The translations under genes were made by a program, and so were the position numbers. A DNA stretch of 64,000 bases, from IMG/VR virus record IMGVR_UViG_3300023179_005186, positions 1-64,000 of that record, one strand, 5' to 3'. The stretch's first letter is position 1. Each line of letters starts with the position of its first letter. Below, piece by piece: positions 776 through 46,500 of this stretch. The notes beneath the pieces are model-generated. The model was not told the origin of the DNA, searched no databases, and worked only from the letters and a program-made list of their open reading frames with translations.

Positions 776-997
776 ATGTCTCATAATTATTATAATGAAA
801 TCCTCTCATATTTTGTAGGAACTTATTGTGTATATCCAGATTGCTGTATTGATGACTATGACTATAACAAGAGGTCAAAAAACAAATTTCTAAAATTAAT
901 AGGTAAAGCAAGTTGTATTGAAAAAAATACTGGATTTATCCTTGTTTTGGCTGTTCAGAAAAAATTATTACTAAATAAATTATCAAGTAATAAATAA
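776..997 (+). CDS. small hypothetical protein
   Basis: 73-aa ATG ORF filling an otherwise empty gap, preceded by an AT-rich spacer; no recognisable motif. Confidence 0.4.
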   Translation: MSHNYYNEILSYFVGTYCVYPDCCIDDYDYNKRSKNKFLKLIGKASCIEKNTGFILVLAVQKKLLLNKLSSNK

Positions 998-1023
998 TTA
1001 TAATGTATTAAATATTTTTTATA

Positions 1024-1031
1024 AAAATTGA
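1024..1031 (+). promoter_or_regulatory. Mimiviridae early promoter AAAATTGA
   Basis: exact octamer 45 nt upstream of ATG 1076. Confidence 0.8.
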
Positions 1032-1075
1032 TTTAAATTTTAAATCTATACATAATAATATATACATTTAAATTA

Positions 1076-3415
1076 ATGCTAAAAAAGCCAAATATAATTA
1101 TTATTGACGACATTGCAGAAAATTTAGATGAATCATTATCTGAAGTTAAAAAAAATAAATCAAATAATATTCGAAAATGTGAATGGGTCAATCAAAGGGG
1201 AGGTTCTTGTCCTTGGAAGTCACTTGGACCTGATAAATCTTATTGTGAAGCCCATTCTAAATATGAGGGTGTTTATACAAAAGATCATATACCAAACATG
1301 AAAAGGTGTTCTTGTTGTAAAAATTTATGGATGGAAGATGGTATAAATAAAACTTGTTGTAGAGATGAAAGAAAAATTATGAGAAAAAATATCAAAGAAA
1401 AAAATTTAGACTTAACAAAAAAATGTATTGGACTTACACACAAAGGAACACCTTGTCTGAATCAAGCTAATGATTCTGATGATTATTGTGGAAAACACCA
1501 AGCCTATAAAATTTATAAACAAACAATAGATTCTGGTAAAAATATATGTAAAAACTGGGTTAGAGGATGTTTTGAAATAATACCAACAGATAAGAAGAGT
1601 TGTTCTAATTGTAGAAAAAAAGAACAAACAAAAGAAAATATTAATAATTTAAATAAAAAAAATAAAGCAATTGAATATAATAATTCAAATCAAGAAATAA
1701 AAATGTGTGGGGATTGTAATAAAATTGTTAAATCCAATGAATTTGTTAAAAACAAATGTTTAAAATGTTATGATACATATAGAAAAAATGAAGAAAATAG
1801 AAAACCTCAAGACCCATTAATCAGACATTTATCTGACTATAAATCGAGAGCAAAAGATAAAAATTTTAAATGGGAATTAACTGATGATGAAGCAAGAAAT
1901 TATTTTAATTCAAAATGTAATTATTGTAATACACTTAATAATTATAATGGTATAGATAGAGTTGATTCATCAATTGGATATATTAAAAGTAATTTAGTTC
2001 CATGTTGTTCTATTTGTAATTTAATGAAAGGAACTAAATCTCCAAAAGATTTTATTGATACAATCACATTTATTTTAAGTATAAATTTCATGATTAAATC
2101 AATGATTAAATTTTCTTATGAAAAATTATTTAAATGTGGAGAAAATGCTAAATTTTACAGATTTATTTCAGAATGTAAAAATAGGAATATAAATTATGAA
2201 ATTACTGAAGATATATACAAATGGATAATAAAACAACCATGTACCTATTGTAAAAATCAATTTGATAGTGGATGTAGAGGAATTGATAGAATAAATTCAG
2301 AAATAGGATATGTATTGGGTAATATAACTCCTTCCTGTTATACTTGTAATATAATGAAAAATACTTTATCCAAGGATGATTTTTTTTGTCATCTTAAAAA
2401 AATTCATAATTTTAAAGTTGAAAATATTATTACAAATGAAAAAACTTTACGTGAAAAAATTATTGAATTATGTAAAAATATTAAACAATTTGAACATGAA
2501 AAATTTAATCATGAACATGAATATTATTTTAATCTAATTTATAATTCAAATAATATTAAAGATATAAAAAAAATTAAAATCGAGTTGGAATTTGTTAAAA
2601 ATAAAAAACAAAAAGATATTTGGAATTATTTTAGAAGGTATGTATCTAGTTTAAAGATTCAAAAAGGTAGCAAATTAATTGGACGACAAATACATATTTT
2701 AGTTAAAGATAGTAATTCTTCAAAATATTTAGGAATAATATCTTTAAGTAGTGATATATATAATTTAGAATCAAGAGATAATTTAATTAGTTGGAATGTT
2801 GAAACTAAAAACGTTAATTTAAAATATATAATGAATATGAGTACTTGTGTACCATTACAACCATTTGGATTTAATTTTAATGGTGGAAAATTATTAGCAT
2901 CCTTAGCATTTTCAAAAGAAGTTTTAAAGTATTTTAAAAAAGAATACGGTGAGCATTTATTAGCGATCACTACCACATCATTATATGGAAAATCTATTCA
3001 ATATGATAGGTTAAAAAATTTAAAATTTATTGGAAAAACTAAGGGAAATAGTTCTTACAAGGTATCTTCTGAACTAACAAATTTATGTTCTAATTTTTTA
3101 AAAAAAGAATATGGATATAATTATGATAAAAAAAAGAAATTTATTATATTACAAAAGACATTTGATAAATTATGTTTACCAAAAGAAGATGTTTTAACTG
3201 ATAATCCGAAAGGTATATATTTTGGTTTCACATATTCAAAATCAAAATACATTCTGAATCAAAAAGAACCTAATTTTGACTTGATTAATAATTCAGAATT
3301 AAAATCCGCACAAGAAATATTTACATGGTGGATAGATAGATGGGCTAATCAAAGGTTTGAAAATTTAACAAAAAATTTAGGAATTAAAAAAGATATTGAA
3401 ATATTTAATAAATAA
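1076..3415 (+). CDS. Cys-rich N-terminus + two HNH-like (beta-beta-alpha-metal) domains + C-terminal DUF4338/DruA-like domain
   Basis: Two CxxC..GIDR(V/I)(D/N)S..GY...N..P.C..CN.MK units at about 1916-2032 and 2240-2359. C-terminal GRQIHILVKD..YLGIISLSS...RD..ISW...NMSTCVPLQPFGFNFNGGKLLASL...TTTSLYGKSIQYDRL resembles DUF4338/DruA and phage Hef-like proteins. Confidence 0.7.
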   Translation: MLKKPNIIIIDDIAENLDESLSEVKKNKSNNIRKCEWVNQRGGSCPWKSLGPDKSYCEAHSKYEGVYTKDHIPNMKRCSCCKNLWMEDGINKTCCRDERKIMRKNIKEKNLDLTKKCIGLTHKGTPCLNQANDSDDYCGKHQAYKIYKQTIDSGKNICKNWVRGCFEIIPTDKKSCSNCRKKEQTKENINNLNKKNKAIEYNNSNQEIKMCGDCNKIVKSNEFVKNKCLKCYDTYRKNEENRKPQDPLIRHLSDYKSRAKDKNFKWELTDDEARNYFNSKCNYCNTLNNYNGIDRVDSSIGYIKSNLVPCCSICNLMKGTKSPKDFIDTITFILSINFMIKSMIKFSYEKLFKCGENAKFYRFISECKNRNINYEITEDIYKWIIKQPCTYCKNQFDSGCRGIDRINSEIGYVLGNITPSCYTCNIMKNTLSKDDFFCHLKKIHNFKVENIITNEKTLREKIIELCKNIKQFEHEKFNHEHEYYFNLIYNSNNIKDIKKIKIELEFVKNKKQKDIWNYFRRYVSSLKIQKGSKLIGRQIHILVKDSNSSKYLGIISLSSDIYNLESRDNLISWNVETKNVNLKYIMNMSTCVPLQPFGFNFNGGKLLASLAFSKEVLKYFKKEYGEHLLAITTTSLYGKSIQYDRLKNLKFIGKTKGNSSYKVSSELTNLCSNFLKKEYGYNYDKKKKFIILQKTFDKLCLPKEDVLTDNPKGIYFGFTYSKSKYILNQKEPNFDLINNSELKSAQEIFTWWIDRWANQRFENLTKNLGIKKDIEIFNK

Positions 3416-3476
3416 TTATAAAAAATTATGATAGAAAAAGATCTAAATTTATTATATATAAAAAGATAATATATTA

Positions 3477-4400
3477 TTATCGCATTTTTAGTATCCAAAC
3501 TGATTCTTGGTATTCTTTGTATCCTAATATCCTAAATATTTTTTTATAAATAGATTTAATAAAATTACATATTTCTTTTTTTTCATTAATATCATTTATA
3601 TTGTCCATTAACTTTATCATATCTATTAATAATATTTTTGAATCAATTATATTTGTATTTTTTATATAATTATAAAAATATTTTTTGTAAATATCTTTTT
3701 TATTTACTTTAGAATCTAATATAATTTTATATAATTCAATATTCGAAATTGTTCGATTCAATTTGTAATTATTCCTATTATATTTAAAAATATCATAATC
3801 TTCTTCATTTTTAGGTCTAAAACCATATTTAGCGTAAAATGGTATTCCGTGTGTAATTGTTCTTAAATATTTTAATTCTAAACCAATATCATAGCACATC
3901 TTTTTAGATAAATCTGTTAACTCAATTTGTTTAATATGTGAGAATAACTTATCTTTTTTTATTAATTTTATTATTATTTGCATTAAAATATCACCAACTT
4001 TATACACATGATTTTTATCATCACTTTTAATACAATCATCGTGATTTGATATTGATTGAATATATAATGTATTATCAATACTATCGCGAGTATCAAAAAA
4101 TAAAAAAACACAATTGTCACTAGTTTCAGTTATATTCATAAAAGATATTTGTTTTTTTGTATCATCATATGGAACTATAGTATCTATATGATATTCATAA
4201 ATTTTACCATCAGATAATTCAATTAATTTTTTCTTACCACCTATTTGCGATTTAAAATTAATTTTATTTGTTGTCTGTGTTAGTATACCTTTTGATAGTC
4301 TACTATCTCTATATAAAATTTCAAATATATTTTGTGTCTCTTCGGCATATTGTATACCTTTAAATTTATTATATACTGTTTTAGTAATTGACACTTTCAT
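3477..4400 (-). CDS. hypothetical protein, possible GNAT-like fold (Mimiviridae-type family)
   Basis: 307-aa ORF; LYIQSI..DDC...GDILMQIII...IELTD.S...PFYAKYGF resembles GNAT motif A/B spacing. Confidence 0.5.
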   Translation of the reverse strand: MKVSITKTVYNKFKGIQYAEETQNIFEILYRDSRLSKGILTQTTNKINFKSQIGGKKKLIELSDGKIYEYHIDTIVPYDDTKKQISFMNITETSDNCVFLFFDTRDSIDNTLYIQSISNHDDCIKSDDKNHVYKVGDILMQIIIKLIKKDKLFSHIKQIELTDLSKKMCYDIGLELKYLRTITHGIPFYAKYGFRPKNEEDYDIFKYNRNNYKLNRTISNIELYKIILDSKVNKKDIYKKYFYNYIKNTNIIDSKILLIDMIKLMDNINDINEKKEICNFIKSIYKKIFRILGYKEYQESVWILKMR

Positions 4401-4517: not shown

Positions 4518-5402
4518 CTAAAAATCTTCAAAACCAGCGTCTAACCATACTGAAATGCGTTTTGGATGTAATGCAACCATCATTAATTCTTCAAAATAAA
4601 TATCAACAATTAGTTTTTTCATCGTTTTATAATCAATTTCAAAGATTGACGGATTTCTTGATAAATTATCCCAATAAATTTTATCTTGATTTTTTTCTAA
4701 TAAATGAATTGCATTTGAATTTAATGATAAATTATCCCAATAAATTTTATCTTGATTTTTTTCTAATAAATGAATTGCATTTGAATTTAATGATAAATAA
4801 TACCAATCAATATTATCTAGATTTTTTTCTAATAATTGAATAGCATTTTTATTTCTTGATAACTCCGTCCAATCAATTTTATCTAAATTTTTTTCTAATA
4901 AATGAATAGCATTTGGATTTATTGATAACCCTGTCCAACAAATTTTATCTAAATTTGCTTCTAATAAAGGAATAGCATTTGGATTTTCTGATAAATAATA
5001 CCAATTAATTTTATCCAAATTTGATTCTAATAAATGAATAGTATTTGGATTGTATGATAACAAATCCCAATTAATTTTATCTATATTAGCTTCTAATAAA
5101 TGTATAGCATTTGAATTAGATGATAAATAATCCCAATCAATTTTGTCTGGATTTGCTTCTAATAAATGAATTGCATTTGGATTTTTTGATAGAAAATGCC
5201 AATTAATTTTATCTGGATTTTCTTCTAATAAATGAATTGCATTTGAATTTGCTGATAAAAACCCCCATTTAATTTCATCTGGATTTGCTTTAATCAAACG
5301 AATAGCATTTGGATTGTATGATAAATGAATCCAATCAATTTTATTAATGTCTATCCAATCTAATAATTTGTATAAAGGTTCTAGTTGTATCAATTTTGGT
5401 AT
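4518..5402 (-). CDS. 22-aa tandem-repeat (solenoid) protein; lacks an N-terminal ATG (ATA at 5400-5402 or TTG at 5391-5393)
   Basis: About 11 copies of xDKIxWxxLSxNxNAIxLLExN. The frame opens after TAA with ATA-CCA-AAA-TTG; the first Met is near the C-terminus. Confidence 0.7.
   Translation of the reverse strand: MPKLIQLEPLYKLLDWIDINKIDWIHLSYNPNAIRLIKANPDEIKWGFLSANSNAIHLLEENPDKINWHFLSKNPNAIHLLEANPDKIDWDYLSSNSNAIHLLEANIDKINWDLLSYNPNTIHLLESNLDKINWYYLSENPNAIPLLEANLDKICWTGLSINPNAIHLLEKNLDKIDWTELSRNKNAIQLLEKNLDNIDWYYLSLNSNAIHLLEKNQDKIYWDNLSLNSNAIHLLEKNQDKIYWDNLSRNPSIFEIDYKTMKKLIVDIYFEELMMVALHPKRISVWLDAGFEDF
4660..4798. repeat. perfect 66-bp tandem duplication (about 2.1 copies) within the repeat-protein gene
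   Basis: 4660-4725 is identical to 4726-4791 and the match continues to 4798. Confidence 0.95.
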
Positions 5403-8727: not shown

Positions 8728-10542
8728 ATGAGAGATTTGATAAATATTGATAATAATCAAATTGATAAACATAATAAATATAAAGTTCAGTATAAACCTT
8801 CCTGTATTTATTGGGGGTTAGGTATAGAAATAGAAGCATATTTAGAATTTGAAAAATATAAAGAAATAAGTAAAAAAGATTTTTTAGAAAATCATAAGAG
8901 AGAAAGATATAGTGTTGATTACTATTCAAATTATAAAAAAAATATTATGAATGAAGTATTTAAATTAATGTATAATAAATTTGGAAATAGTATTTTATAC
9001 ATGCCTGTATTAATGAATTCTCATAGTTTTATGGATACAGATATATTTAATAATTCAAAAACTTTATATACGAAAAAAGGTGGAATAAATCCTGATTTTT
9101 TTGGATTTACTTTACAGGAATATTTAGAAATTAAAAATAAATTTTTTAAACAATCAAATCCTACATGGATTTTTGATGGAGATACAATTGAATTTATTTC
9201 TACAAATTTTTTTAATGTTAAATTATCTAATGTTTTAAAAGAAGTAGAATCTAATAAAAATAGTTTTATTGATAAATTAAATCACGAATTGAAAATTTTA
9301 GACGAAATTAGTTTATTAAAAAAATATGGAAAAATTAAAATAATGGAAAAAAATCATCCATTTGCAATTCATTTAACCAATTATAATAATGTTGCTATAT
9401 TTAATAATGGAACAATTCATTTTAATATTACTCTTCCTACAAAATTAAATGAAAATTCAGAAATATTTAATAAAGAAAAATTTATAAATATACATAAGAA
9501 AGCAATTAAAATGATTCAGTGGTTTGAACCTTTAATTATAGCTGTATATGGTTCACCAGATCCATTTGCTATTTTACAAAAAGAATTACAATGTTCAGAC
9601 AATTTTATTTTTTCTAGTTGTTCACAAAGAAATGCTGTTTCAAGATATGTAAGTATTGGAACATATGATACTGATTTAATGGAAAGTGGAAAAATTCTTG
9701 TAAAGTCTATAGATGACTTGAGTGTTAGTAAATTAGATTATTGGTGGTTTAATAGATTTCATGAAAATAGTGCATATATTAAATTAGATAAAATTGGTTT
9801 AGATATCAATTTTAATAAACATTGGAATCATGGTATTGAAATAAGATTTTTAGATTATATTAATAATAATAATTTAATCAAAGAATGTTTTGAATTTATA
9901 ATATATTTGATGGATTTAAGTTTAGAATCTAAAATAGATGATTTAAAAAATCCAATAATTTCTCCTGAATTTAATGATTTAGTATTTAATATAATGTTCC
10001 AGGGTAGTGATTATTCTTTAGATAAAAATATAATTAAAATTTATGAATCAATATGTAAATTTAACTTAGAAAAAACAAATGTTGAAGAAGTTTATTATGA
10101 AATCTTTGATGGATTAAAAAAAAAATTTAATAAAGAATTTATTGAATTATCAAGTTCACATGAGCTTTATAAAAATAAATCTGAAGTTAATAAATTAATA
10201 ATGCCAGTTGGATTATATTCTAGTTTAGTTTTGGATACTAAATTTTTAAATATAAAAGCTGAAGACATGAATACAATAGATGAATTTAAAATAGAAGATA
10301 AATCAAATACACCAGAATTGATTAAAAACTATTATTTAAATAAACAAATTAATTATATTAATGAACAAATAAATAATTTAGACTATGTTGAAAAATTTAT
10401 AGATTTTACTAACAAAATAGAAAAAATAGAAGTAATAAGTAATTTAAATGAAGAAAAAAATAATTTAGAAACTAAATTGGAATCTATAAATATAAATACT
10501 ATGAATAAAACTGATAAATGTAATTGTTGTATAATAATGTAA
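8728..10542 (+). CDS. glutamate-cysteine ligase/GCS2-like ATP-dependent carboxylate-amine ligase with C-terminal CaaX
   Basis: WGLGIEIE, DTIEF, GTIHFNITLP, HGIEIRFLD match GS/GCS superfamily motif order; ends CNCCIIM-stop. Confidence 0.65.
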   Translation: MRDLINIDNNQIDKHNKYKVQYKPSCIYWGLGIEIEAYLEFEKYKEISKKDFLENHKRERYSVDYYSNYKKNIMNEVFKLMYNKFGNSILYMPVLMNSHSFMDTDIFNNSKTLYTKKGGINPDFFGFTLQEYLEIKNKFFKQSNPTWIFDGDTIEFISTNFFNVKLSNVLKEVESNKNSFIDKLNHELKILDEISLLKKYGKIKIMEKNHPFAIHLTNYNNVAIFNNGTIHFNITLPTKLNENSEIFNKEKFINIHKKAIKMIQWFEPLIIAVYGSPDPFAILQKELQCSDNFIFSSCSQRNAVSRYVSIGTYDTDLMESGKILVKSIDDLSVSKLDYWWFNRFHENSAYIKLDKIGLDINFNKHWNHGIEIRFLDYINNNNLIKECFEFIIYLMDLSLESKIDDLKNPIISPEFNDLVFNIMFQGSDYSLDKNIIKIYESICKFNLEKTNVEEVYYEIFDGLKKKFNKEFIELSSSHELYKNKSEVNKLIMPVGLYSSLVLDTKFLNIKAEDMNTIDEFKIEDKSNTPELIKNYYLNKQINYINEQINNLDYVEKFIDFTNKIEKIEVISNLNEEKNNLETKLESININTMNKTDKCNCCIIM

Positions 10543-10551
10543 ATTAAACAT

Positions 10552-11673
10552 TTATTCTAATAATACATTTAAATATTTAATACATTCATCATAATCATTA
10601 AAAAATTCATTAATAAAATTTTCATAATATTGTACAAATAAATCATATGAATCATTGATCTTAGTAATTTTTCCAATAATATTATTATTAAGGTAAATTT
10701 CCTGATATAAACTTATTAAATTATTTGAATAATTAATATTTTTAATTGAATATTTTGATTTAAATGTATTCGAAATAAATTTATCATTATCATTTGATAA
10801 TTTTTTTACTAATAAATTATGAATATTAGATTTAATACTATATTCATAATCTTTAATAATTTGTAAATGAGATTCTAAACTTTTTTTAATATTTTCTTCA
10901 AGTCTAATACAAGAATATTTTATAATTCTAAATTCTTCATAAAATTTTTCAAGATATGTAATTAAATAATCTAAATTTGTATTTGGTAACAAATTCTTAT
11001 TAATTATAATTTTTTCAGCAATGCTTTGTATTACACAAATAGAATATTCTATTTTTAAAGTTAAATTAAATATAGAATCTTCTAAAGAATTATGTGTAAT
11101 AATATATTTACGATTTGGTATAGATTTATGCATAGAATATGGTATACACATAATATAATAATTTTTTTTATCATAATAAAATGATTCTATCTCAAATCTT
11201 TTTTTACCAACAATACCTGAATTTAAGGAAATTAAAATTGCTAAATTTATATTTGTAAATTTCATATCAAATTTTAATTTATCAATTTGATCTTGATCAA
11301 TTGTTTTATTATAATTTTTAACTTCTACTATAATTTTTATTTTATTTTTAGTTATAATTTGTATATCTCCTGAATGTGGAATTTTTGATGTATTTTCTAT
11401 TTGATAATCTGGAAATCTATCTTTTAGTATATCCATGACAATATTTTCACCAGATGATCCTTTTGAAGTTAGTTTTGATTCTGTAATTGTATTTGAATCT
11501 CCTTGTATATTGTAATTTAAAATAATTGTAGGATCATTTTTAATAAAATTTTTTAACCATAAATTATATCCTTGTGTAAAAATATCATCAAAAATTATAT
11601 TTTGATATTCTGGAGTAATTATACTTAGTAATTTATATTTATTCAAATCAATTTTATATTCTACATCATTCAT
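10552..11673 (-). CDS. PD-(D/E)XK restriction-endonuclease-like nuclease
   Basis: KGSSGE...HSGDIQI....IIVEVKNY...IDKLKFD catalytic pattern. Confidence 0.7.
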   Translation of the reverse strand: MNDVEYKIDLNKYKLLSIITPEYQNIIFDDIFTQGYNLWLKNFIKNDPTIILNYNIQGDSNTITESKLTSKGSSGENIVMDILKDRFPDYQIENTSKIPHSGDIQIITKNKIKIIVEVKNYNKTIDQDQIDKLKFDMKFTNINLAILISLNSGIVGKKRFEIESFYYDKKNYYIMCIPYSMHKSIPNRKYIITHNSLEDSIFNLTLKIEYSICVIQSIAEKIIINKNLLPNTNLDYLITYLEKFYEEFRIIKYSCIRLEENIKKSLESHLQIIKDYEYSIKSNIHNLLVKKLSNDNDKFISNTFKSKYSIKNINYSNNLISLYQEIYLNNNIIGKITKINDSYDLFVQYYENFINEFFNDYDECIKYLNVLLE

Positions 11674-12270: not shown

Positions 12271-15200
12271 TTATTTTTTTATTTTAGTATTTTTTACTTT
12301 TGAATCATCAGTTTGAATAGTAATTTTAGTTTTACTAATTTCTTTATTATTTTTTTTAGTTGATTTATTAATTTTTTTATTTTTTTGATTTTCTTCTAAA
12401 TCCTGCATTTCATCCATATAATTAATCCATTTATTATATTGAACAATAAGTAAATCTAGTTCATTAATCCATAAATCTTGTACAGTCATTTTCATATAAA
12501 TATCTAATTCCTTAGATTTTTCATCATAATCTTTATTAAGTTCATCAATTTTTTCTAAAGTTAAAGAGAACAAAGGTAAATTAGTTAAATAATCATATGA
12601 TGGTTTTGAATTAATTGATGTAGCTAATTCAGGATACTTTAGATTAATTAAATCTTGAACAATATCTGTTTTTTTTCTACGTTCAATCACGATTTTTTTA
12701 CTTAAAATTTGTTCAATAAATTTTTTTCTATATTTTAATAATAACATTTCATTTTCTAATACCTTTATGTGATATTTTTTTCTTTTTTCATACATTTCTA
12801 ATCTTATTTCTACATAATCTTTAAGAATATGATTAGCAGAATGATATTTTGTAATAATATTTTTTTTGTATAAATGCATATTTGAAGTTTTAATTGTACT
12901 AATTATTTTTAATTTTTTTTCTAATGTATTAGACTTTATTAATTTTTGTAATTCATTGTTTTTAAAATATAATTTAATATCAATCTTAACATTACCAGAA
13001 TTATTTTCATAATCATAAATTAATTCTTCTTTTTGAACTAATCCTGATAAAAAATCAATATAATCTTGAGTCCATGTACCAATAGGTAATTCTTTAATAT
13101 GAACACAATTTTCTGAAATTACTGTAATTTTTCCAACTGAATTGTAAGTATTTTCATTTATTTTTTCTATTGTACCAATAAATCCTCTAAACCATGGATT
13201 TAATTCATCTAGTTCAGATATATCAGTACCTTTTAAATATTTTTTTAAATTTGAAATAATTTCTACAGGATTATGAGGAGGAATATTTGTACTAAATCCT
13301 GTACCAATACCTTCACTACCATTTACTAAAATCATAGGGATGATTGGATAATAACTTTCAGGTTCAACAACATCACCCTCTTCAATATTATATTTAAGAA
13401 CAGCTTCATCTTTATTAATAAATATATTTCTTGTTAAATCAGATAATTGAGTAAAAATATATCTTGCACTAGCTGCATCTTTACCTCCCATACGTCTAGA
13501 ACCAAAGTTACCTAAAGGTTTAAGAAGGTTAAGATTATTGGATCCACAATAATCTTGTGCCATATTAATAATTGCACCTTGTAAACTGGCTTCACCATGA
13601 TGATAACCTGTATGTTCGCTGATATATCCTGATAATTGAGCAACTTTGATTTCTTCATTATCTAATTTGCGTTTAAATGCTCCATATAAAATTTTACGTT
13701 GTGAAGGTTTTAATCCATCAGATATATTAGGAATAGATCTAATATTATCCTCATGTGAGAATTGAATCAAATCTTTATTGACAAATTCATCAAAAGTTAT
13801 TTTCTTTTTATCAAAGTCAATAGCAACTTCTGGATCAAACTTTCTAACCCATTCTTTACGATCATTTGATCTTTGTTTTGCAAAAGCTAATGTTAATGCT
13901 TGATAAGATGGTTCTAATTTATCATTTTCACATTCAGAAACTGATTGAATATCTTCATCAGATTTATCAGAAGAATTTTTAGATTTTGCTGATTTATTTG
14001 ATACCAAGTCTTCATCTTCTTCATATTCATCAATATCATCTTTATTTTTAGATCCACTTTTTATATTTTTATTTAATTTAGAAGAATCCAATGTCCAAAC
14101 ATAATTGACAATTCGATCTTCTAAATCTGTAAATGATTCTTTGGCTTCTTTTGCAGTTGAAGTACCCAATCCCTTATAATATTTGATTGTGTAGTTTTTA
14201 AAGGAATCATTAACTTTATCAGTCCATTTTTTATATTCGGCTAATGTGTAAAAAATTTCAGGATTTGCTTTTTTACTATCTGATTTTTTAAACACTTTAA
14301 TAATAGGAGTTGCAATAGATTGAATAAATCCTTCAATCTTTAATAAACTTGGCCAGAAATAATGAAAGAAATTCATTAATAATCCTTTGATATGGTATCC
14401 ATCACAATCTTGATCAGTTAGAATAACAATTCCTCCATATCTTAACTTTTTAGTATCATTATATACTTGATTTTGTTTTAATCCTAAGATTTGTTTCAAG
14501 TTCTTAATTTCTTCATTACCAAGCAATTGTTTAGGATTAGCTTCACGAACATTTAGCAATTTTCCCTTAAGTGGAAATACACCATACTTGTCTCGTCCAA
14601 TTACTTCTAGTCCTGACATTGCAAATGATTTTGCTGAATCTCCTTCTGTTAAAATTAATCTACATTCGGAAGAACGTTTTGAACCAGCCAATCTAGCATC
14701 ATCTAATTTAGTAAGATTTTTAAGATTTACATTTTTTTTACCATCAGATTTTTCTAATTCAGCTAATTGTTTAACTGAAGCTAATTGAACTAATTCATCA
14801 ACCAATCCAGTTTTACAAATCTTTTGAATAAATTTATCATCAATATCACATTTTATATTGAATAAAGATGATTTTGTTGTTAGAGATTCTTTACTTTGAG
14901 AACTAAAAGAAGGATCTTCAATAGTTGAATTAATAAATACTGTAATATTGTCTTTAATTTGAGATGGTTTAATTTTAAGTGTTTTATGTTTATCTAAAAT
15001 AGTTTTTGTAACACCATCTACAATTTGATTAACAATCATATTCAAATGAGTTCCTCCTAAAAAAGTACTGATTTTATTAACAAAAGTCATGTGTTGGAAT
15101 CCAGAATTATTATCATATACTACACCAACAGACCATCTAGAATTAAATTCTTGATAAATTACTTGAATATTCTCATCTTCCGTATAAAACATCTTGATAT

Positions 15201-17085
15201 AATCTTCAAATGACTTGATATCTAAGTATTTGTCATTCAAATAAACTTTAACATTTGTATTAGTATTACCTGCTAAATCATATGCACGTCTTTTTAAGAG
15301 AGAAGCCATATCTTTATTAAGATTCTTTAATCCAAATCTTTTATAATCAGGTTTAAAAGTAATTTTTGTATAAGATTCTGTAGATTTAGAAATATCAGTA
15401 ATTATTGGTTCTTCTTTATCAAACATATTATTTGTAAATTTTTGATTGTATTTTTTTTTTCTTATTGGATCTGAAATTTCAACTTCAAAAAGCTCGGAAT
15501 AAATATTAGCACAATTATGTGTAACGGTGAAATCATTAATTAAAAATCTCTGATTATCATCAATTTCAAATCCAATATAATCACTAATTTCAATCTTATT
15601 AACTTTGAGATATCCGGTAGTTTTAGAAGAATGGATTCTATCTCCAGAACATTTTTTTCTTGGAAGCAATGTTGGAATATCAGATATATTTTCACCTGAT
15701 ATATTTATATTATATGCTTCTCCCTTTTTTTTTTCACCATTTAACATATATTTAGTATTTCTTTTATGAATAGATGTGTAAAATCCAAGTGAACGTGATA
15801 AGAATACAATATCTTGAGCAAGACGTTCGTGATTTAAAGCTTGTGTTATTACAATTCTAGTACCATCCCTTTTAACAGTTTCATCTGTATCAATAATTCC
15901 ACCTAAAACTTTTAATCTTGTATCACTATCATTAATAATATATTCATTTGGAATATGTTTGTTATTAACTAAATTATATTTATCTAGTTGTTTTTTAAGA
16001 GAATAACCTTTTTTACCTGATTCTTCTAAATAATTAATTAATTCAGGATCATTCTCACCATTACCAAGCCATAACCCCAAAACATATGGATCTAATTCAA
16101 CATCTTTATGTTCCCATTGAACACATTCTCCACGAATACCAGCTAATCTTAATTTAGTTGTTTCATTTAATTTAATATAATCTTGAATATTCATGTCAAC
16201 GATATTATTGTCGGGAATTGACTTGCAAAATTCCTCTAATTCTAATTTTGCTTGAGTAACTTTAAAAGTATCTTGAGAAATTTTAATAGTTTTTTTATTA
16301 ATACAATTCTCTTCGTGATTCCACCATAATACAGACCATCCATTTTCAGATCCATTCCAAAAAATAACTTTATGATCTGGCATATGTAATGTTAATGTAT
16401 GGTTATCATTTACCTTATAAGATTCACCATTTGCTTGAATTATTTTATACATTTGACCATTACCTTTAATAATATTTTTAATATTTCTAATTTTTCCATC
16501 ATCACCAATTAACTTATCTTCTTTTGTTAAATCTTTTGCTTGTTTGATACCACCATTAAAAAGAGGAATTAGTGTATCGGGTGCTAAGCACTTTGATCCT
16601 AGACCATTTTTTCCCCCGACAATTTTACCTTTTTGATCATAGTTACCAGAAGTTAGTAGATTTCCAAAAATAAGTTCAGGAACATAAATATTATATTCTT
16701 TATGTAATTCAATTGGAATTGTTGATCCATTATTATAAACTGAAATTATACCAGATTTTTCATCAATATTAATTTTAATAACATTACATTTTATATCTCT
16801 AACGGTATTATCAGCAGCATTAACCACGATTTCATCAAAGATTTTGTATAAACCTAACACAACGTTGCAATCTTTTTTAATAATCCGATTTTCATCTTCA
16901 TCATAAATATACATGTTGATTATATCATTTTGTACTGACCCTATATATGTATCAGGTAAATCTAATATATGTTGATGCAATGACTTTTTTTTATATTGTT
17001 CCTCAATTGTAGGACCATTATTTTTAACTATTTTTTCTTTTTTTTCTACTTTATCACCAGTTTTTTTTGCATTTTTTGAACTCAT
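12271..17085 (-). CDS. TOP2: DNA topoisomerase II (type IIA), intein-containing
   Basis: EIVVNAADN, GGKNG, TEGDSA, PLKGKLLNV, TDQDCDG, YYKGLGTS, DGLKPSQRK, YHHGEASL, ASARYIF. Confidence 0.98.
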   Translation of the reverse strand: MSSKNAKKTGDKVEKKEKIVKNNGPTIEEQYKKKSLHQHILDLPDTYIGSVQNDIINMYIYDEDENRIIKKDCNVVLGLYKIFDEIVVNAADNTVRDIKCNVIKINIDEKSGIISVYNNGSTIPIELHKEYNIYVPELIFGNLLTSGNYDQKGKIVGGKNGLGSKCLAPDTLIPLFNGGIKQAKDLTKEDKLIGDDGKIRNIKNIIKGNGQMYKIIQANGESYKVNDNHTLTLHMPDHKVIFWNGSENGWSVLWWNHEENCINKKTIKISQDTFKVTQAKLELEEFCKSIPDNNIVDMNIQDYIKLNETTKLRLAGIRGECVQWEHKDVELDPYVLGLWLGNGENDPELINYLEESGKKGYSLKKQLDKYNLVNNKHIPNEYIINDSDTRLKVLGGIIDTDETVKRDGTRIVITQALNHERLAQDIVFLSRSLGFYTSIHKRNTKYMLNGEKKKGEAYNINISGENISDIPTLLPRKKCSGDRIHSSKTTGYLKVNKIEISDYIGFEIDDNQRFLINDFTVTHNCANIYSELFEVEISDPIRKKKYNQKFTNNMFDKEEPIITDISKSTESYTKITFKPDYKRFGLKNLNKDMASLLKRRAYDLAGNTNTNVKVYLNDKYLDIKSFEDYIKMFYTEDENIQVIYQEFNSRWSVGVVYDNNSGFQHMTFVNKISTFLGGTHLNMIVNQIVDGVTKTILDKHKTLKIKPSQIKDNITVFINSTIEDPSFSSQSKESLTTKSSLFNIKCDIDDKFIQKICKTGLVDELVQLASVKQLAELEKSDGKKNVNLKNLTKLDDARLAGSKRSSECRLILTEGDSAKSFAMSGLEVIGRDKYGVFPLKGKLLNVREANPKQLLGNEEIKNLKQILGLKQNQVYNDTKKLRYGGIVILTDQDCDGYHIKGLLMNFFHYFWPSLLKIEGFIQSIATPIIKVFKKSDSKKANPEIFYTLAEYKKWTDKVNDSFKNYTIKYYKGLGTSTAKEAKESFTDLEDRIVNYVWTLDSSKLNKNIKSGSKNKDDIDEYEEDEDLVSNKSAKSKNSSDKSDEDIQSVSECENDKLEPSYQALTLAFAKQRSNDRKEWVRKFDPEVAIDFDKKKITFDEFVNKDLIQFSHEDNIRSIPNISDGLKPSQRKILYGAFKRKLDNEEIKVAQLSGYISEHTGYHHGEASLQGAIINMAQDYCGSNNLNLLKPLGNFGSRRMGGKDAASARYIFTQLSDLTRNIFINKDEAVLKYNIEEGDVVEPESYYPIIPMILVNGSEGIGTGFSTNIPPHNPVEIISNLKKYLKGTDISELDELNPWFRGFIGTIEKINENTYNSVGKITVISENCVHIKELPIGTWTQDYIDFLSGLVQKEELIYDYENNSGNVKIDIKLYFKNNELQKLIKSNTLEKKLKIISTIKTSNMHLYKKNIITKYHSANHILKDYVEIRLEMYEKRKKYHIKVLENEMLLLKYRKKFIEQILSKKIVIERRKKTDIVQDLINLKYPELATSINSKPSYDYLTNLPLFSLTLEKIDELNKDYDEKSKELDIYMKMTVQDLWINELDLLIVQYNKWINYMDEMQDLEENQKNKKINKSTKKNNKEISKTKITIQTDDSKVKNTKIKK
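15514..16590 (-). mobile_element. intein (359 aa) in the Top2 ATPase lid, with degenerate LAGLIDADG endonuclease
   Basis: GGKNGLGSK|CLAPDT ... VNDNH (block B) ... DFTVTHN|CANIYS. Confidence 0.95.
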
Positions 17086-43096: not shown

Positions 43097-43598
43097 AGAT
43101 CATTTTGTCACCAACAGCAAGCTGCCAATTAAGTTACTATTCATACTTAATTGGGTAAACAGTGTAAGAATAGTCTAGATATAACTTGCTAGTCTTGTTT
43201 TAAATAAGGCAAGATTACCAATTTGTTCGGGAACCCCTTAAAGCACTACATACTAAACATAATTTGAAAAAATTATGTGGTTTTGCGCAATGGCAAAAAT
43301 TTTTCATAGCAGAATATAATAAACTTTTAAATATACTTAAAAAAAGCTATGAAATAAGTAAAAATTGTAGTGATATTCCTAAAGGATAATAGGAAACCCG
43401 CAGCCGGTCATCTAAGTTCGTTTGATAGAATATGATGATGGTTCAGAGACTTGATGGTAGTCGGTCGGTAATGAAGGTCTAATCAACCTGAACTGGCTTA
43501 AGATAAAGTCCAATTGTCTTCCGAAAGGAAGAATGAAAGATATTTTAAAAATATAAACCTAAGTCAATAAAATGATATGGTTTATGGATATCTTCATG
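43097..43598 (+). mobile_element. group I intron 3 of RPB1 (502 nt, no ORF)
   Basis: P1: exon GGUGAU pairs with GUCACC (43107-43112) with a U-G wobble. P10: UCAUUUU (43100-43106) pairs with exon 4 GAAAUGA. P 43226, Q AACCCGCAGC 43395, R GTTCAGAGACTTGA 43441, S AAGATAAAGTCC 43500; terminal G43598. Confidence 0.93.
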
Positions 43599-46500
43599 GA
43601 AATGAACATTTTTGCACCTCAGAGTATTGAAACCCAATATGAATTAGAGGAAATTGCAGATTTAAAATTACAAATAATTACACCTCAATCTTCTTCACCA
43701 ATTATAGCGATGAAGCAAGATCAATTATTAGGTGCATATAATTTAACTTCTGAATATTATAAATTAGATTGGAGAACTACTATGAATTTATTAGCGTCCA
43801 CTCAAATGGAATCACTTGATAATGTTCCTAAAAACAAAGATTATGCTGGAAAAGAAATTTTCTCTTATTTAATTCCTAAAAAAATTAATCTTATGAAGGG
43901 TGATCCTACTAAACCAACTATTTTAGTTAAAAATGGTATTATGGAATCAGGTATTTTAGGGGATGATTCGCTAGGTGTAAAAAAATCACCTAGTTTAGTA
44001 CAATTAGTCTGGGATGAATATGGTGTTGAGAAAACAAAAACTTTTTTGGATAATACTACCAAATTAGCAAATAACTTTAATTTATTTCACGGTATGACTG
44101 TTGGTATTAAAGATCTTTATATCAGTAATGAACTTGATAATAAAATGCAACAGACTTTTGATACTAAAAAATTAGAAATTCAACATGAAATTACTGAAAT
44201 TGAAAATAATCCAGATATGATGGATGGTGATCTTTTTGAAATGTCCGTTAATCAAAAATTATCAGTTATTCGTGATGATGTATCCAAAGTTATTATGGCT
44301 AGTATGACTAAAGAAAATAATTTTAGGATTATGATTGAATCTGGATCAAAAGGTAAACCAATTAATATCACTCAAATGGCTGGATTAGTTGGTCAACAAG
44401 ATTATCATGGTGGACGCATATTGAAAAACTTTAATAATAGATCTTTACCTTATTTTTTTCAAAATGATGATCGTGCCGAATCAAGAGGTTTTATTGAAAG
44501 ACCTTTTATGCATGGATTAAATATCTCAGAATTTATTTTTCATCATCTATCTTCTAGAGAAGGTCTAATTGATCAAACTGTGCGATCTGTTACTCCTGAT
44601 ACTAGAATTACTATTATTGAAAATTCGATTCCCAAAACTGTTGAAATAGGTCCTTGGATTGATTCGATAATTAAAATAAAATCTGATCAAGTCGAACACG
44701 ATGTTAACGAATTTGAATTAGTTAATGTAACTGGTATTACAATCCCAACTGTTGACTCTGTTGGAAAAGTTACTTGGGCTAATGTAACTGCAGTTACTAG
44801 ACATGCTAAAGGAAATCAATTGTTTGAAATCGTAACTAGAGGTGGTAGAAAAGTTAAAGTTCCTGAATCTAAATCACTTTTGATCTGGAATAATGAGACT
44901 AAACAATTTGAAGATAAACTTACTCCAGATGTTAAAGTCGGAGATTTCGTTCCTGTTACAATGAATTTACCTCAACCTCCTATTATAAATAATCATATTG
45001 ATATGACAGAATTTAAAATACAGGAAGAGAAAGATTCGTTATTACCAGATAAATTTATATTAAATAAATTAAATGGTCAATTCATTGGATTATTCTTAGC
45101 TGATGGTAATGTTAATTATGAAAATGGCTATATACATTTAAATAATTGTAATGAAAATGTGTTAAACTTTATTAAAAAGTACTTTGACGGTCTAGATATT
45201 AGTTATAATGAGAATAAAAAAATATTAGAAATAGAAACTATTACTGATATTAGTGGTTATTCTAGAATTTTATGCAAGTTCCTATATGCTACTTGTGGTA
45301 ATGATGCTTATGAAAAACATGTTCCTGATTTTGCATTCAATGCTCCTGAAGAGTTTGTTATTGGACTAATTGATGGATATATATCTAGAAATGCTTGTGT
45401 AACCGAATCCTCTATTACTACCTTATCTTGTTCATTAAAGTTAATTGATGGAATTAATATGTTATTAAATAGAATTGGTGTATTTTCTAAAATTAGTACT
45501 CATAAATATGATAACAAAAACAATGATATTAAAGCCAATTATAATATTATTGAAATTGGTATTAGAGCACAATGGGTGCGCAAATTTAAATCTAAAATGA
45601 TATCTCTAATTAACTTTAATAAAAATGATAAATTTTATAAAATAGAAAGTTCAACAATTACTCATACAAATTACATAGAACAAGAAGATGTTGTACTTGA
45701 TCAAATTGTTGAAATTAATCAACTTAATCCTGAAAATTATCCTAAACTATATGATTTAACTGTTCCTGGAACTTTTAACTTTATAATAAGTAATGGAATG
45801 GGTTGTCGAGATACTGCAGATAGTGGTTATATTCAAAGAAAGCTAATCAAATCAACTGAAGATTTCATGGTAAATTATGATGGTACAGTTAGAAATGCTG
45901 TAGGTAGAATTCAACAATTCGTGTATGGTGAATCAGGTGCAGACACAGTTAAACAATATGAATATAAATTTCAAATAATGGAACTTTCAAATTCAGAAAT
46001 TGCTAACAAATTTAAATTTACTAAAGAAGAACTTACTAAAGTCAAAAATTTTACTGAATCTGATAATAATAAATTTTATCAAAATATATTAAAATGTCGT
46101 GATCATTTAAGGTTTACTCAAATGAAATCAACTGTTGAATATAAAATTCTTAATATAAAATACATGTTACCAGTTAATATATATCGTATTATAAATAATA
46201 TTAGAAATGATCCTGATAAAAAAGGTAATGTAAATTATGATTGTGAATATATTCTAAACTTAATTGATAGAATTTTAGAAAGTAAAAATACCAAGTTATA
46301 TTGCATGACTGAAGAAGAAATGAAAGATGAATCTTCTATTAAATATAAAGATGATCAAATGGCAAAGACAGCCTTAAAATATGCTTTATTAGAATCACTT
46401 GCTCCAAAAAAATGTATTTATACTTATAAATTTACAAAGGAACAGTTAGAAGATGTAGCTACTGATATTATTTCAAGTTTTAACTCAAGTATTGTTGAAC

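Follow-up and report, generated by a model that had tools for sequence, protein, structure and literature searches.

What kind of protein does a giant virus encode when a single reading frame joins nuclease-like units to a domain otherwise known from the bacterial Druantia defence system, and why would such a gene be kept? This question is raised by one ORF in a window of 64,000 nt, which is the whole stretch of DNA analysed here and covers positions 1 to 64,000 of the 315-kb IMG/VR record IMGVR_UViG_3300023179_005186. The record is that of a freshwater giant virus (Nucleocytoviricota) from a lake, and its giant-virus origin is supported by a GC content of about 20%, by NCLDV capsid genes, and by topoisomerase II and RPB1 genes carrying inteins. 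The initial annotation, made from sequence alone, had described a Cys/His-rich N-terminus, two tandem HNH-like units, a DruA/DUF4338-like C-terminal block and an early promoter, without other Druantia genes nearby. We confirmed this observation. Its interpretation was only partly supported, as set out below.

Architecture of the nuclease-DruA ORF

The ORF starts with ATG, has no internal stop and is intact, and about 49 full-length orthologues were found at 37-91% identity. The positions of its parts and of the neighbouring features are collected in Table 1.

Table 1. Features of the locus (window positions; residue numbers refer to the 779-aa protein)
Positions	Strand	Residues	Feature
1024..1031	+		AAAATTGA, promoter-like octamer, 52 nt upstream of the ATG
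1076..3415	+	1-779	Intact ORF of 779 aa (stop codon included in the positions): zinc modules, two PacI-type nuclease units, DruA-like domain
1166..1795	+	31-240	Basic Cys/His-rich region, presumed to bind DNA, with five predicted zinc-binding clusters (two CCCH of DUF5763 type, three Cys4 ribbons): C35/C45/C57/H60; C78/C81/C94/C95; C117/C127/C138/H141; C158/C165/C176/C179; C211/C214/C228/C231
1805..2080	+	about 244-335	PacI-type beta-beta-alpha-metal unit 1; core C281, C284, D294, R295, Y302, N306, C311, C314, N315, K318
2141..2416	+	about 356-447	PacI-type beta-beta-alpha-metal unit 2; core C389, C392, D404, R405, Y412, N416, C421, C424, N425, K428
2441..3412	+	456-779	DruA-like domain with predicted GNAT fold (Pfam envelope 466-715)
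3477..4400	-		Conserved 307-aa gene of unknown function, convergent with the nuclease gene; far anchor of the variable interval that begins at the capsid gene in related genomes

In the C-terminal block, the motifs GRQI..LVKD (residues 536-545), RD..ISW (567-573), VPLQPFG.N..GGKLLA (592-608) and TTTSLYG..QY.RL (632-646) are all present, and they are the most conserved columns among 32 orthologues. A match to the DUF4338 profile had been named beforehand as the critical check, and the block matched Pfam PF14236 with E=3.4e-25 (89.3 bits against a cut-off of 27) and the PADLOC DruA profile with E=1.6e-24. The AF2 model of the domain has a pLDDT of 93.8 and a pTM of 0.89, and its top Foldseek hit in AFDB Swiss-Prot is E. 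coli DruA P0DW34 (E=9.1e-22, TM 0.77, 342 columns), where both structures are predictions. All listed PDB hits of the model are GNATs, structural alignment with VIA-align gave 347 chains with Z of 8 or more, of which those listed are GNATs, and PMC10853773 also calls DUF4338 a GNAT. With respect to acyl-CoA (or aminoacyl-tRNA) binding and transfer, which is conjectural, only the conserved glycine-rich loop after strand 4 and the Tyr after strand 5 are seen. The Tyr at residue 643 and the Gly at residue 604 are invariant. The domain is strongly basic, with a net charge of +23 and a pI of 9.6, and the charge is positive in 99% of 142 family members.

The two CxxC-GIDR-CxxCN units, with cores at C281-K318 and C389-K428, are 36% identical to each other over 90 residues (E=3e-16), and their C, D, R, Y, N and K positions are invariant or nearly so in 32-45 orthologues, down to 28-39% identity, which argues for purifying selection. 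No Pfam HNH model matches, and the canonical catalytic His is absent from both units. However, we could refine the HNH-like assignment, because the units are specifically of the PacI type (His-Me finger group 20). For unit 1, PacI is the top Foldseek hit (E=1.3e-3, probability 1.0), VIA-align to PacI 3ldy_A gave Z 6.8 and an rmsd of 1.8 A over 82 residues at 23% identity, and PHROG 1035 matched with E=1.6e-26. For unit 2, a profile search against PDB sequences found PacI at E=8.7e-7, and the alignment places D404, R405, Y412, N416, C421, C424, N425 and K428 on PacI D92, R93, Y100, N104, C109, C112, N113 and K116. Unit 1 has D294, R295, Y302 and N315, and in both units the Asp and Asn metal ligands and the loop Tyr of the PacI pattern are kept. 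According to PMC5714182, from which the residue roles are taken, PacI-group enzymes lack the His, a loop Tyr takes over its role, and most members are from giant viruses. Thus, the absence of the canonical His does not argue for inactivity, and by this analogy the units are probably active.

The N-terminal clusters are conserved Cys/His columns in the orthologues, modelled by AF2 with pLDDT 75-97, although the pTM of the N-terminal model is only 0.59. The region gave a weak PF19067 hit, and its net charge of +18 lies at the 97th percentile of the ORFs of this virus; DNA binding is inferred.

The raw count of AAAATTGA in the window equals chance and only a positional test was informative. In the 315-kb record, 36 of 208 ORFs carry the octamer in sense within 110 nt upstream, against about 4.7 expected, and 33 of those 36 lie 39-62 nt from the ATG. 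Moreover, 22 of 50 non-redundant relatives have it 36-65 nt before the ATG. Hence the site is promoter-like, whereas its early timing is inferred from Mimivirus promoters. Evidence for transcription is limited to one metatranscriptome run, which holds 70% of the sampled words. A hairpin terminator after the stop codon was not better than shuffles (z = -0.89).

No other Druantia part was found: the ten neighbouring ORFs scanned, including one of 2140 aa, gave no PADLOC hit, and the 315-kb record holds a single PF14236 match. The locus is therefore not seen as a type I Druantia operon with DruB, DruC, DruD and the DruE helicase, within the ORFs scanned.

A family at the flank of the capsid gene

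The DruA-like domain forms a large family in giant-virus sequences, with 1436 cluster representatives matching its profile, and is fused to PacI-type HNH, LAGLIDADG, GIY-YIG or HNH_3 nucleases. Of 54 long members, 35 carry LAGLIDADG_3, 21 LAGLIDADG_1, 10 NUMOD3, 7 HTH_7, 4 SegE-type GIY-YIG and 3 HNH_3. In one lineage a separate LAGLIDADG gene lies beside a DruA-like gene, while in another the two are fused. A scan of bacterial and archaeal genomes with the family alignment returned no confirmed relative.

These genes nearly always abut the 3′ end of a major capsid protein (MCP) gene, in either orientation. In 79 of 80 IMG/VR loci an MCP ORF abuts; in 67 it is upstream on the same strand, with a gap of at most 300 nt in 56 of those, and in 12 the genes are convergent. 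IMG/VR giant-virus contigs may have been recognised through capsid genes, which would inflate co-occurrence, but this cannot explain abutment within about 150 nt, nor the result from unselected assemblies, where 7 of 7 contexts have an MCP gene upstream. In contrast, 3 of 3 stand-alone DruA-like genes are not beside an MCP gene.

In relatives whose MCP is 73-100% identical, within flanks limited to 6 kb and without resolution of MCP paralogy, the content of this interval is variable. Some have this fusion on the + strand, and others have a zinc-module plus double PacI-unit gene without DruA on the - strand, a GIY-YIG gene, or a DUF559/Vsr-like fragment. LAGLIDADG and HNH_3 genes or fusions also occur at the locus. 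In one relative, a 69%-identical orthologue of the convergent 307-aa gene bounds the differently filled interval. Under the same limits, MCP identity and DruA-domain identity correlated only weakly (Spearman 0.22), and pairs with MCP at least 90% identical have DruA domains 51-87% identical.

A probable selfish endonuclease and its alternatives

Our analysis itself establishes the composition of the protein (basic zinc-module region, duplicated PacI-type units, DruA-type domain with GNAT fold in the model), its membership in a giant-virus family in which the DruA-like domain is joined to different homing-endonuclease catalytic domains, the position of these genes at the 3′ end of an MCP gene, and the presence of other nuclease genes in that interval in close relatives; cleavage, target site, homing, DNA binding and early expression are all inferred, and any acyl transfer is conjectural. 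The reading which we favour, although it is only about as likely as not, is that of an early-expressed, free-standing, homing-type selfish endonuclease; a free-standing selfish endonuclease of unusual architecture was one of the alternatives offered by the initial annotation. This reading fits the comparative data best, given the capsid-gene flank, the swapping of nuclease classes within the family and the variable gene content in close relatives. In this view, the two PacI-type units would act as a covalent pseudo-dimer (PacI itself works as a homodimer), in each unit the Asp and Asn would hold the metal and the loop Tyr (Y302, Y412) would replace the missing His, and together they would make a double-strand break at a specific site in co-infecting relatives that lack the gene, plausibly in or next to the conserved capsid gene. 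Recombinational repair would then copy the gene, or exclude the rival's markers. The DruA-like domain is the constant accessory module of the family, and because it is strongly basic and its polar residues are conserved, we suppose that it binds nucleic acid and directs, licenses or chemically marks the substrate, DNA recognition or modification being most likely. On the other hand, long-lived full-length orthologues down to 37% identity at the same locus also fit a domesticated, vertically kept function, and double PacI-unit genes without DruA at this locus indicate that the domain is not needed for that location or for self-tolerance.

A non-mobile conflict weapon, in which the DruA-like domain senses foreign nucleic acid and activates the fused nuclease against virophages, co-infecting viruses or host DNA, as a one-protein analogue of a bacterial defence system kept in a ‘conflict island’ beside the capsid gene, is possible but less likely. 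Such action was also proposed by the initial annotation and is conjecture on present evidence. It would agree with the homology to DruA of an experimentally validated anti-phage system, with the swapping of effectors on a constant domain, which is typical of immune systems, with the early-type promoter motif, with the long-term retention of orthologues with conserved catalytic residues, and with the speculation in PMC5714182 that viral PacI homologues may be viral restriction enzymes. However, the fused nucleases are site-specific homing classes with their own NUMOD/HTH modules and not typical indiscriminate effectors, no partner genes were found, and the strict position in both orientations and the replacement by other nuclease genes in close relatives are hallmarks of homing elements. 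Moreover, the role of DruA in Druantia is itself unknown, and the mechanistic Druantia papers found in our literature search concern type III, which lacks DruA. A decaying or dead relic, suggested by the missing His and the absence of a Pfam HNH match, is very unlikely, because active PacI has the same His-less pattern, the ORF is full length and the pattern residues are conserved across distant orthologues.

Two further readings rest on the predicted GNAT fold. A single-chain restriction-modification enzyme, which would acylate bases in the virus's own DNA as phage Mu Mom does and cut unmodified DNA, appears unlikely. Mom (8bv8) ranks second in a second structural comparison, with one of the longest alignments (Z 10.4, 183 residues), the RNA-base acetyltransferases Kre33/NAT10 and TmcA also appear, Mom is now known to glycylate adenine in dsDNA from Gly-tRNA (PMC13219725), a cyanophage homologue has been annotated as Mom from structure, and the basic charge and the conserved loop and Tyr would agree. 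But the list of GNAT matches is flat (Z 9-10.5) and does not single out Mom, profile comparison with Mom (hhalign) gave a probability of 1.9%, the Pfam scan gave no PF25680 hit, and nuclease-only relatives occur at the same locus. No 8-bp palindrome, including the PacI site, is avoided in the 315-kb record; TTAATTAA occurs 155 times against 127 expected, and only TAATTA and GAATTC are modestly depleted, a test which we judged uninformative as TAA stop codons confound it. Very unlikely, too, is a protein acetyltransferase connected with capsid biology, which would explain the capsid-gene neighbourhood, and to which homing endonuclease genes invading the conserved locus would merely have fused. 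The top structural neighbours include the N-terminal acetyltransferases NatF/Naa60 and RimI, the capsid gene is constantly adjacent, and the interval is clearly invaded by mobile nucleases; yet the adjacency goes with the nuclease-associated forms and not with stand-alone DruA-like genes, the early-type promoter contrasts, by inference, with late capsid expression, and both halves of the fusion are conserved across about 49 orthologues.

A more speculative and unlikely possibility, of great interest if true, is that the DruA/DUF4338 domain is a DNA-directed modifying or base-reading module which mobile elements across all domains attach to their DNA-cutting enzymes, namely homing endonucleases in giant viruses, transposases in bacteria and ParB-like nucleases in phages. 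The giant-virus protein would then be a single-chain ‘modify self, cut non-self’ enzyme driving itself into rival genomes at the capsid locus, and Druantia's DruA an exapted copy of the module.

We found no paper linking Druantia-type domains with giant viruses, and the family, its position and the variable interval are new. As the biochemical role of DruA, the signature protein of type I Druantia, is unknown, a large viral family in which the same domain is covalently tied to well-understood site-specific nucleases gives a tractable one-protein system for finding out what it does. It also shows that the capsid-gene flank of mimivirus-like giant viruses is a hot spot where at least five nuclease classes compete, which bears on how giant viruses exchange genes and exclude rivals during co-infection. 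On the inferred active-site pattern, it extends the His-less, Tyr-dependent PacI mechanism to a covalently duplicated single-chain form, and such enzymes could be a source of new rare-cutting nucleases.

Related systems

Restriction endonuclease PacI (PDB 3LDY/3M7K) and group 20 of Jablonska et al. 2017 (PMC5714182), for which no Pfam model exists, share the beta-beta-alpha-metal core with flanking Cys4 zinc site and the pattern C-x-Y-C ... G-[IV]-D-R-x-[DN]-S ... Y ... N ... C-x-x-C-N-x-x-K, with Arg in place of the catalytic His. PacI is a 142-aa homodimer from a bacterium, whereas here two diverged units sit in one chain, preceded by extra zinc modules and followed by a 320-aa DruA-like domain. 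DruA of type I Druantia (E. coli UMEA 4076-1) is homologous over the whole domain (residues 3-317 of the domain against 57-379 of DruA) at 23% identity, but it is bacterial, whereas the viral domain is fused to nucleases and lacks DruB-E partners among the ORFs scanned; as DruA's own biochemical function is unknown, the homology gives no mechanism. Mom, which has an essential HTH-like insertion, shares a GNAT fold acting on double-stranded DNA, but the match is no better than to ordinary acetyltransferases.

Free-standing homing endonucleases of T4-like phages (Seg, Mob, Hef) are likewise intergenic genes lodged beside highly conserved genes, with different nuclease classes replacing one another at the same locus (PMC2988022). 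Those genes also show patchy presence among relatives, to which the variable interval content and weak identity correlation seen here, within 6-kb flanks and without resolution of MCP paralogy, may correspond. None of those carries a DruA/GNAT domain. The claim of the initial annotation that DUF4338 occurs in T4-like phage Hef proteins is not supported. Hef-type endonucleases are placed in the Vsr-like family (PMC3239194), no Vsr-like (EDxHD) domain was found in this ORF by the Pfam scan, and tblastn with the DruA-like domain hit only cyanophage, pelagiphage and marine-virus records and no coliphage record.

Stand-alone DruA-like proteins of T4-like cyanophages and pelagiphages (S-PRM1, S-SCSM2R, HTVC008M, Mosig), already noted by the Phold preprint, have the same domain at 25-38% identity with PF14236 above cut-off. 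The match of pelagiphage HTVC008M to residues 404-742 was considered as a possible HNH-DruA fusion in phages, but this was rejected since the phage protein has no Cys-rich unit, and the three phage proteins inspected are stand-alone, without an HNH unit or other nuclease domain; they are not next to capsid genes and lie among replication genes. Finally, according to automatic cluster annotation in the ESM Atlas, the same domain is fused to IS4, Tn5-like, ISAs1 and IS701 transposases in bacteria and to ParB_N in phages. There it would likewise be attached to a DNA-cutting or DNA-joining enzyme of a mobile element, with different catalytic partners and hosts, and the TM by query is 0.53-0.78.

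Structure of the ORF and its viral setting

The region 1076-3415 (+) is a single intact ORF of 779 aa, in a window with about 20% G+C that forms the first 64 kb of a 315,722-bp IMG/VR virus record, estimated by CheckV to be about 28% complete. The window and the record carry giant-virus hallmarks, namely a topoisomerase II gene and an RNA polymerase RPB1 gene, each interrupted by an intein, and three NCLDV capsid paralogues elsewhere in the record; this genome is rich in homing elements. In the ESM Atlas, the cluster containing this protein has 125 members, all of which are viral, with Nucleocytoviricota the commonest phylum. Public runs holding the sequence are lake and freshwater metagenomes from several studies between 2011 and 2024, and a 2015 metatranscriptome run holds 70% of the sampled words.

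The observation in the initial annotation held, as every element that it listed was present. The C-terminal block matched Pfam PF14236 (DruA, formerly DUF4338) at E=3.4e-25, with 89.3 bits against a cut-off of 27, over residues 466-715, and matched the PADLOC DruA model at 1.6e-24. Its four motif strings, GRQI..LVKD, RD..ISW, VPLQPFG.N..GGKLLA and TTTSLYG..QY.RL, fall at residues 536-545, 567-573, 592-608 and 632-646, respectively, and are the best conserved columns of the family. The two CxxC-GIDR-CxxCN units are a genuine duplication, being 36% identical over 90 residues (E=3e-16), and the N-terminus holds five conserved Cys/His clusters. The octamer AAAATTGA lies 52 nt before the ATG. Although it is no commoner in the window than in shuffles, it behaves positionally as a promoter element, since in the 315-kb record 36 of 208 ORFs have it in sense within 110 nt upstream, against about 4.7 expected, and 33 of the 36 lie 39-62 nt from the ATG. 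This motif marks early genes in Mimivirus, and early timing in the present virus is inferred by analogy. The statement that no other Druantia genes are nearby was correct, as none was found among ten neighbouring ORFs.

The two predicted halves of the protein

No Pfam HNH model matched the protein, whereas PHROG families annotated as ‘endonuclease VII’ and ‘HNH endonuclease’ did, and tblastn found many small free-standing phage genes matching either unit. The decisive comparison was with the restriction enzyme PacI. A profile of 45 orthologous N-terminal regions found PacI among all PDB sequences at E=8.7e-7, and the alignment places C389/C392, D404, R405, Y412, N416, C421/C424, N425 and K428 on PacI C63/C66, D92, R93, Y100, N104, C109/C112, N113 and K116. 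Moreover, an AlphaFold2 model of residues 1-455 (pLDDT 87.5) had PacI as its top Foldseek match, and unit 1 superposed on PacI at 1.8 A over 82 residues, with Z 6.8. According to the systematic classification of His-Me fingers (PMC5714182), the PacI group lacks the catalytic histidine, a tyrosine in the loop takes over that role, no Pfam model exists for it, and it consists mainly of giant-virus proteins. Therefore, the missing His is not a sign of decay. The Asp, Arg, Tyr, Asn, Cys and Lys positions are invariant or nearly so in both units across orthologues down to about 30% identity. PacI works as a homodimer, and we infer that two units in one chain could cut both strands as a monomer, although the pTM of the N-terminal model is only 0.59.

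A model of residues 456-779, built on 142 diverse family members, was confident (pLDDT 93.8, pTM 0.89). Its best match among reviewed UniProt models was DruA of the E. coli type I Druantia system (E=9e-22, TM 0.77), covering essentially the whole domain, and all listed PDB matches were GNAT acyltransferases, in agreement with the statement that DUF4338 is a GNAT domain (PMC10853773). In a second structural alignment phage Mu Mom ranked second (Z 10.4, 183 residues), but the list was flat, with Z between 9 and 10.5, and a profile comparison with Mom gave no signal (probability 1.9%). Mom is relevant because it has recently been shown to transfer glycine from Gly-tRNA to adenine in double-stranded DNA (PMC13219725), and a cyanophage homologue of the present domain has also been annotated as Mom on structural grounds. 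The domain is strongly basic, with a net charge of +23 and a pI of 9.6, at the 95th percentile of this virus's ORFs, and 99% of 142 family members have a net positive charge. Its conserved positions include a glycine-rich loop after strand 4 and a tyrosine after strand 5, which are the places where GNATs bind the cofactor and protonate the leaving group. From these data we infer that the domain probably binds nucleic acid and may be catalytically competent.

Family members and their position at the capsid gene

The ORF has about 49 full-length orthologues at 37-91% identity, all from metagenomes and none with an informative name. A profile of the DruA-like domain found 1436 cluster representatives among 1.84 billion proteins, 348 of them below 1e-30, and most of the best 150 have the Asn/Lys/Ile-rich composition of AT-rich giant viruses. 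We scanned 54 long members that lack the PacI pattern; all have PF14236, and the other domains found were LAGLIDADG_3 in 35 members, LAGLIDADG_1 in 21, NUMOD3 in 10, HTH_7 in 7, SegE-type GIY-YIG in 4 and HNH_3 in 3. In one lineage a DruA-like gene and a LAGLIDADG gene are separate neighbours, and in another they are fused. Stand-alone forms of about 325 aa also exist, in giant-virus contigs, in Faunusvirus and in bdelloid rotifer assemblies.

Phage homologues were found only in T4-like cyanophages, pelagiphages and marine-virus records, and the three that were inspected are stand-alone and lack any nuclease unit. A scan of bacterial and archaeal genomes found no confirmed relative. According to automatic cluster annotation in the ESM Atlas, the same domain is fused to DDE transposase domains (IS4, Tn5-like with Tnp_DNA_bind and Dimer_Tnp_Tn5, ISAs1 and IS701) in bacterial clusters of 50-199 members, and to ParB_N in a 235-member phage cluster, which suggests a general link between DruA-like domains and mobile-element enzymes. 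The domain is thus a recurrent partner of enzymes that cut or join DNA for mobile elements.

The genomic position is the strongest new result. In seven contexts fetched from unselected assemblies, all seven nuclease-associated family members lie downstream of an NCLDV major capsid protein (MCP) gene. One of these is a 524-kb assembly of the window's own lineage, in which the capsid gene ends 3.8 kb upstream and a DUF559/Vsr-like fragment and other ORFs lie in between; the window itself starts only 1 kb upstream of the gene, so its capsid gene is cut off. In IMG/VR, 278 loci encode the domain, and of the best 80, 79 have a capsid ORF abutting the DruA-like ORF, the one exception being a contig that ends 2.2 kb upstream. 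In 67 the capsid ORF is upstream on the same strand, with a gap of at most 300 nt in 56 of those, and in 12 the two genes are convergent, so that in both arrangements the gene sits at the 3′ end of the capsid gene. IMG/VR giant-virus contigs may have been selected through capsid genes, but this cannot produce abutment within about 150 nt and does not apply to the seven unselected contexts. By contrast, three of three stand-alone DruA-like genes on long contigs are not next to a capsid gene.

Among 24 loci centred on capsid genes 73-100% identical to that of the window's lineage, the downstream content varies: some carry this fusion on the + strand at gaps of 417-2935 nt, and others carry, on the - strand, a gene with the same zinc modules and two PacI-type units but no DruA domain. 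In one of the relatives' loci, L123, the interval between the capsid gene and the orthologue of the window's 307-aa gene (69% identical) holds that DruA-less nuclease gene and a GIY-YIG gene instead. With flanks limited to 6 kb and capsid paralogues not separated, identity of the DruA-like domain tracks identity of the adjacent capsid gene only weakly (Spearman 0.22), and pairs with capsid genes at least 90% identical have DruA-like domains 51-87% identical.

Coordinates of the features in the window and in loci of other contigs (L numbers denote these loci)
Location	Strand	Feature
Window 1076-3415	+	Fusion ORF with zinc modules, two PacI-type units and DruA-like domain
Window 900-3500		Segment recurring in freshwater and lake metagenomes
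Window 4518-5393	-	291-aa ORF made almost entirely of a repeat of about 22 residues, of the form LS.NPNAI.LLE.N.DKI.W
Window 10552-11673	-	373-aa ORF with a weak, sub-threshold NERD nuclease-related match (E=4e-4, 21.3 bits against a cut-off of 22.1)
Window 12271-17085	-	Topoisomerase II gene; intein with a homing endonuclease (Hom_end_hint E=7e-12, Hom_end E=2e-6) between the ATPase and the DNA_gyraseB/Toprim parts
Window 43572-48464	+	RPB1 gene; intein (Intein_splicing E=2e-28) with a LAGLIDADG_3 endonuclease domain
L123:5723-10410; L013:3221-7000; L018:1612-5000; L019:2747-5000		Hypervariable island 3′ of giant-virus major capsid genes, holding in different lineages a DruA-less double PacI-unit gene, a GIY-YIG gene with CCHC knuckles, a DUF559/Vsr-like fragment, a serine resolvase plus a Cas12f/TnpB-like fragment, a separate LAGLIDADG gene, or a Bro-N gene
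L127:5001-5996		Stand-alone DruA-like gene in a 329-kb giant-virus contig, about 650 nt upstream of the DNA polymerase B gene, another highly conserved gene
L128:5001-6023 and 9785-10807		Two copies of a stand-alone 340-aa DruA-like gene among 7tm_1 receptor genes on a 210-kb contig

Homologues of near-identical length to the two L128 copies are annotated in bdelloid rotifer genomes (Adineta, Rotaria, Didymodactylos), and they may be eukaryotic acquisitions of the viral gene.

Interpretation and sequence composition of the record

Site-specific nuclease classes, lodging beside a highly conserved essential gene in either orientation, replacement by other nuclease genes in near relatives and an apparently partly decoupled history together match the behaviour of free-standing homing endonuclease genes in T4-like phages (PMC2988022). 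We therefore favour, with no more than moderate confidence, a selfish, homing-type endonuclease that would be expressed early in infection. The architecture, the family and the genomic position were read from sequences, profile matches and predicted structures, but nuclease, transferase and homing activities, like all mechanistic steps, are inferences from homology, conservation and genomic context. Long retention of full-length orthologues with intact motifs also fits a domesticated weapon against competitors or virophages, a reading that we regard as possible but less likely. A restriction-modification-like enzyme, in which the GNAT domain would mark the virus's own DNA, remains possible though unlikely, being weakened by the existence of DruA-less versions of the nuclease at the same locus and by the absence of a specific link to Mom. 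The role of the DruA-like domain is the main point on which these readings are uncertain; it is not required for the locus or for tolerance of the nuclease, and it is nevertheless the constant element joined to four nuclease classes.

The interpretation in the initial annotation was supported in part. In particular, its statement that DUF4338 occurs in T4-like phage Hef proteins is not supported, as Hef-type enzymes are assigned to the Vsr-like family (PMC3239194) and the domain found no coliphage record. Each component of the protein is already known: PacI-type units in giant viruses were noted in 2017 (PMC5714182), DUF4338 was called a GNAT in 2024 (PMC10853773) and DruA-like proteins in cyanophages were noted in 2025. 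We found no paper connecting Druantia-type domains with giant viruses, and met none, in the searches that were run, describing the fusion family, its nuclease swapping or its capsid-flank position.

In the whole 315-kb record, relative to a maximal-order Markov model, GAATTC is about 2.5-fold under-represented (43 observed, 110 expected), TAATTA is depleted (878 against 1176) and CAATTG is enriched (141 against 91).
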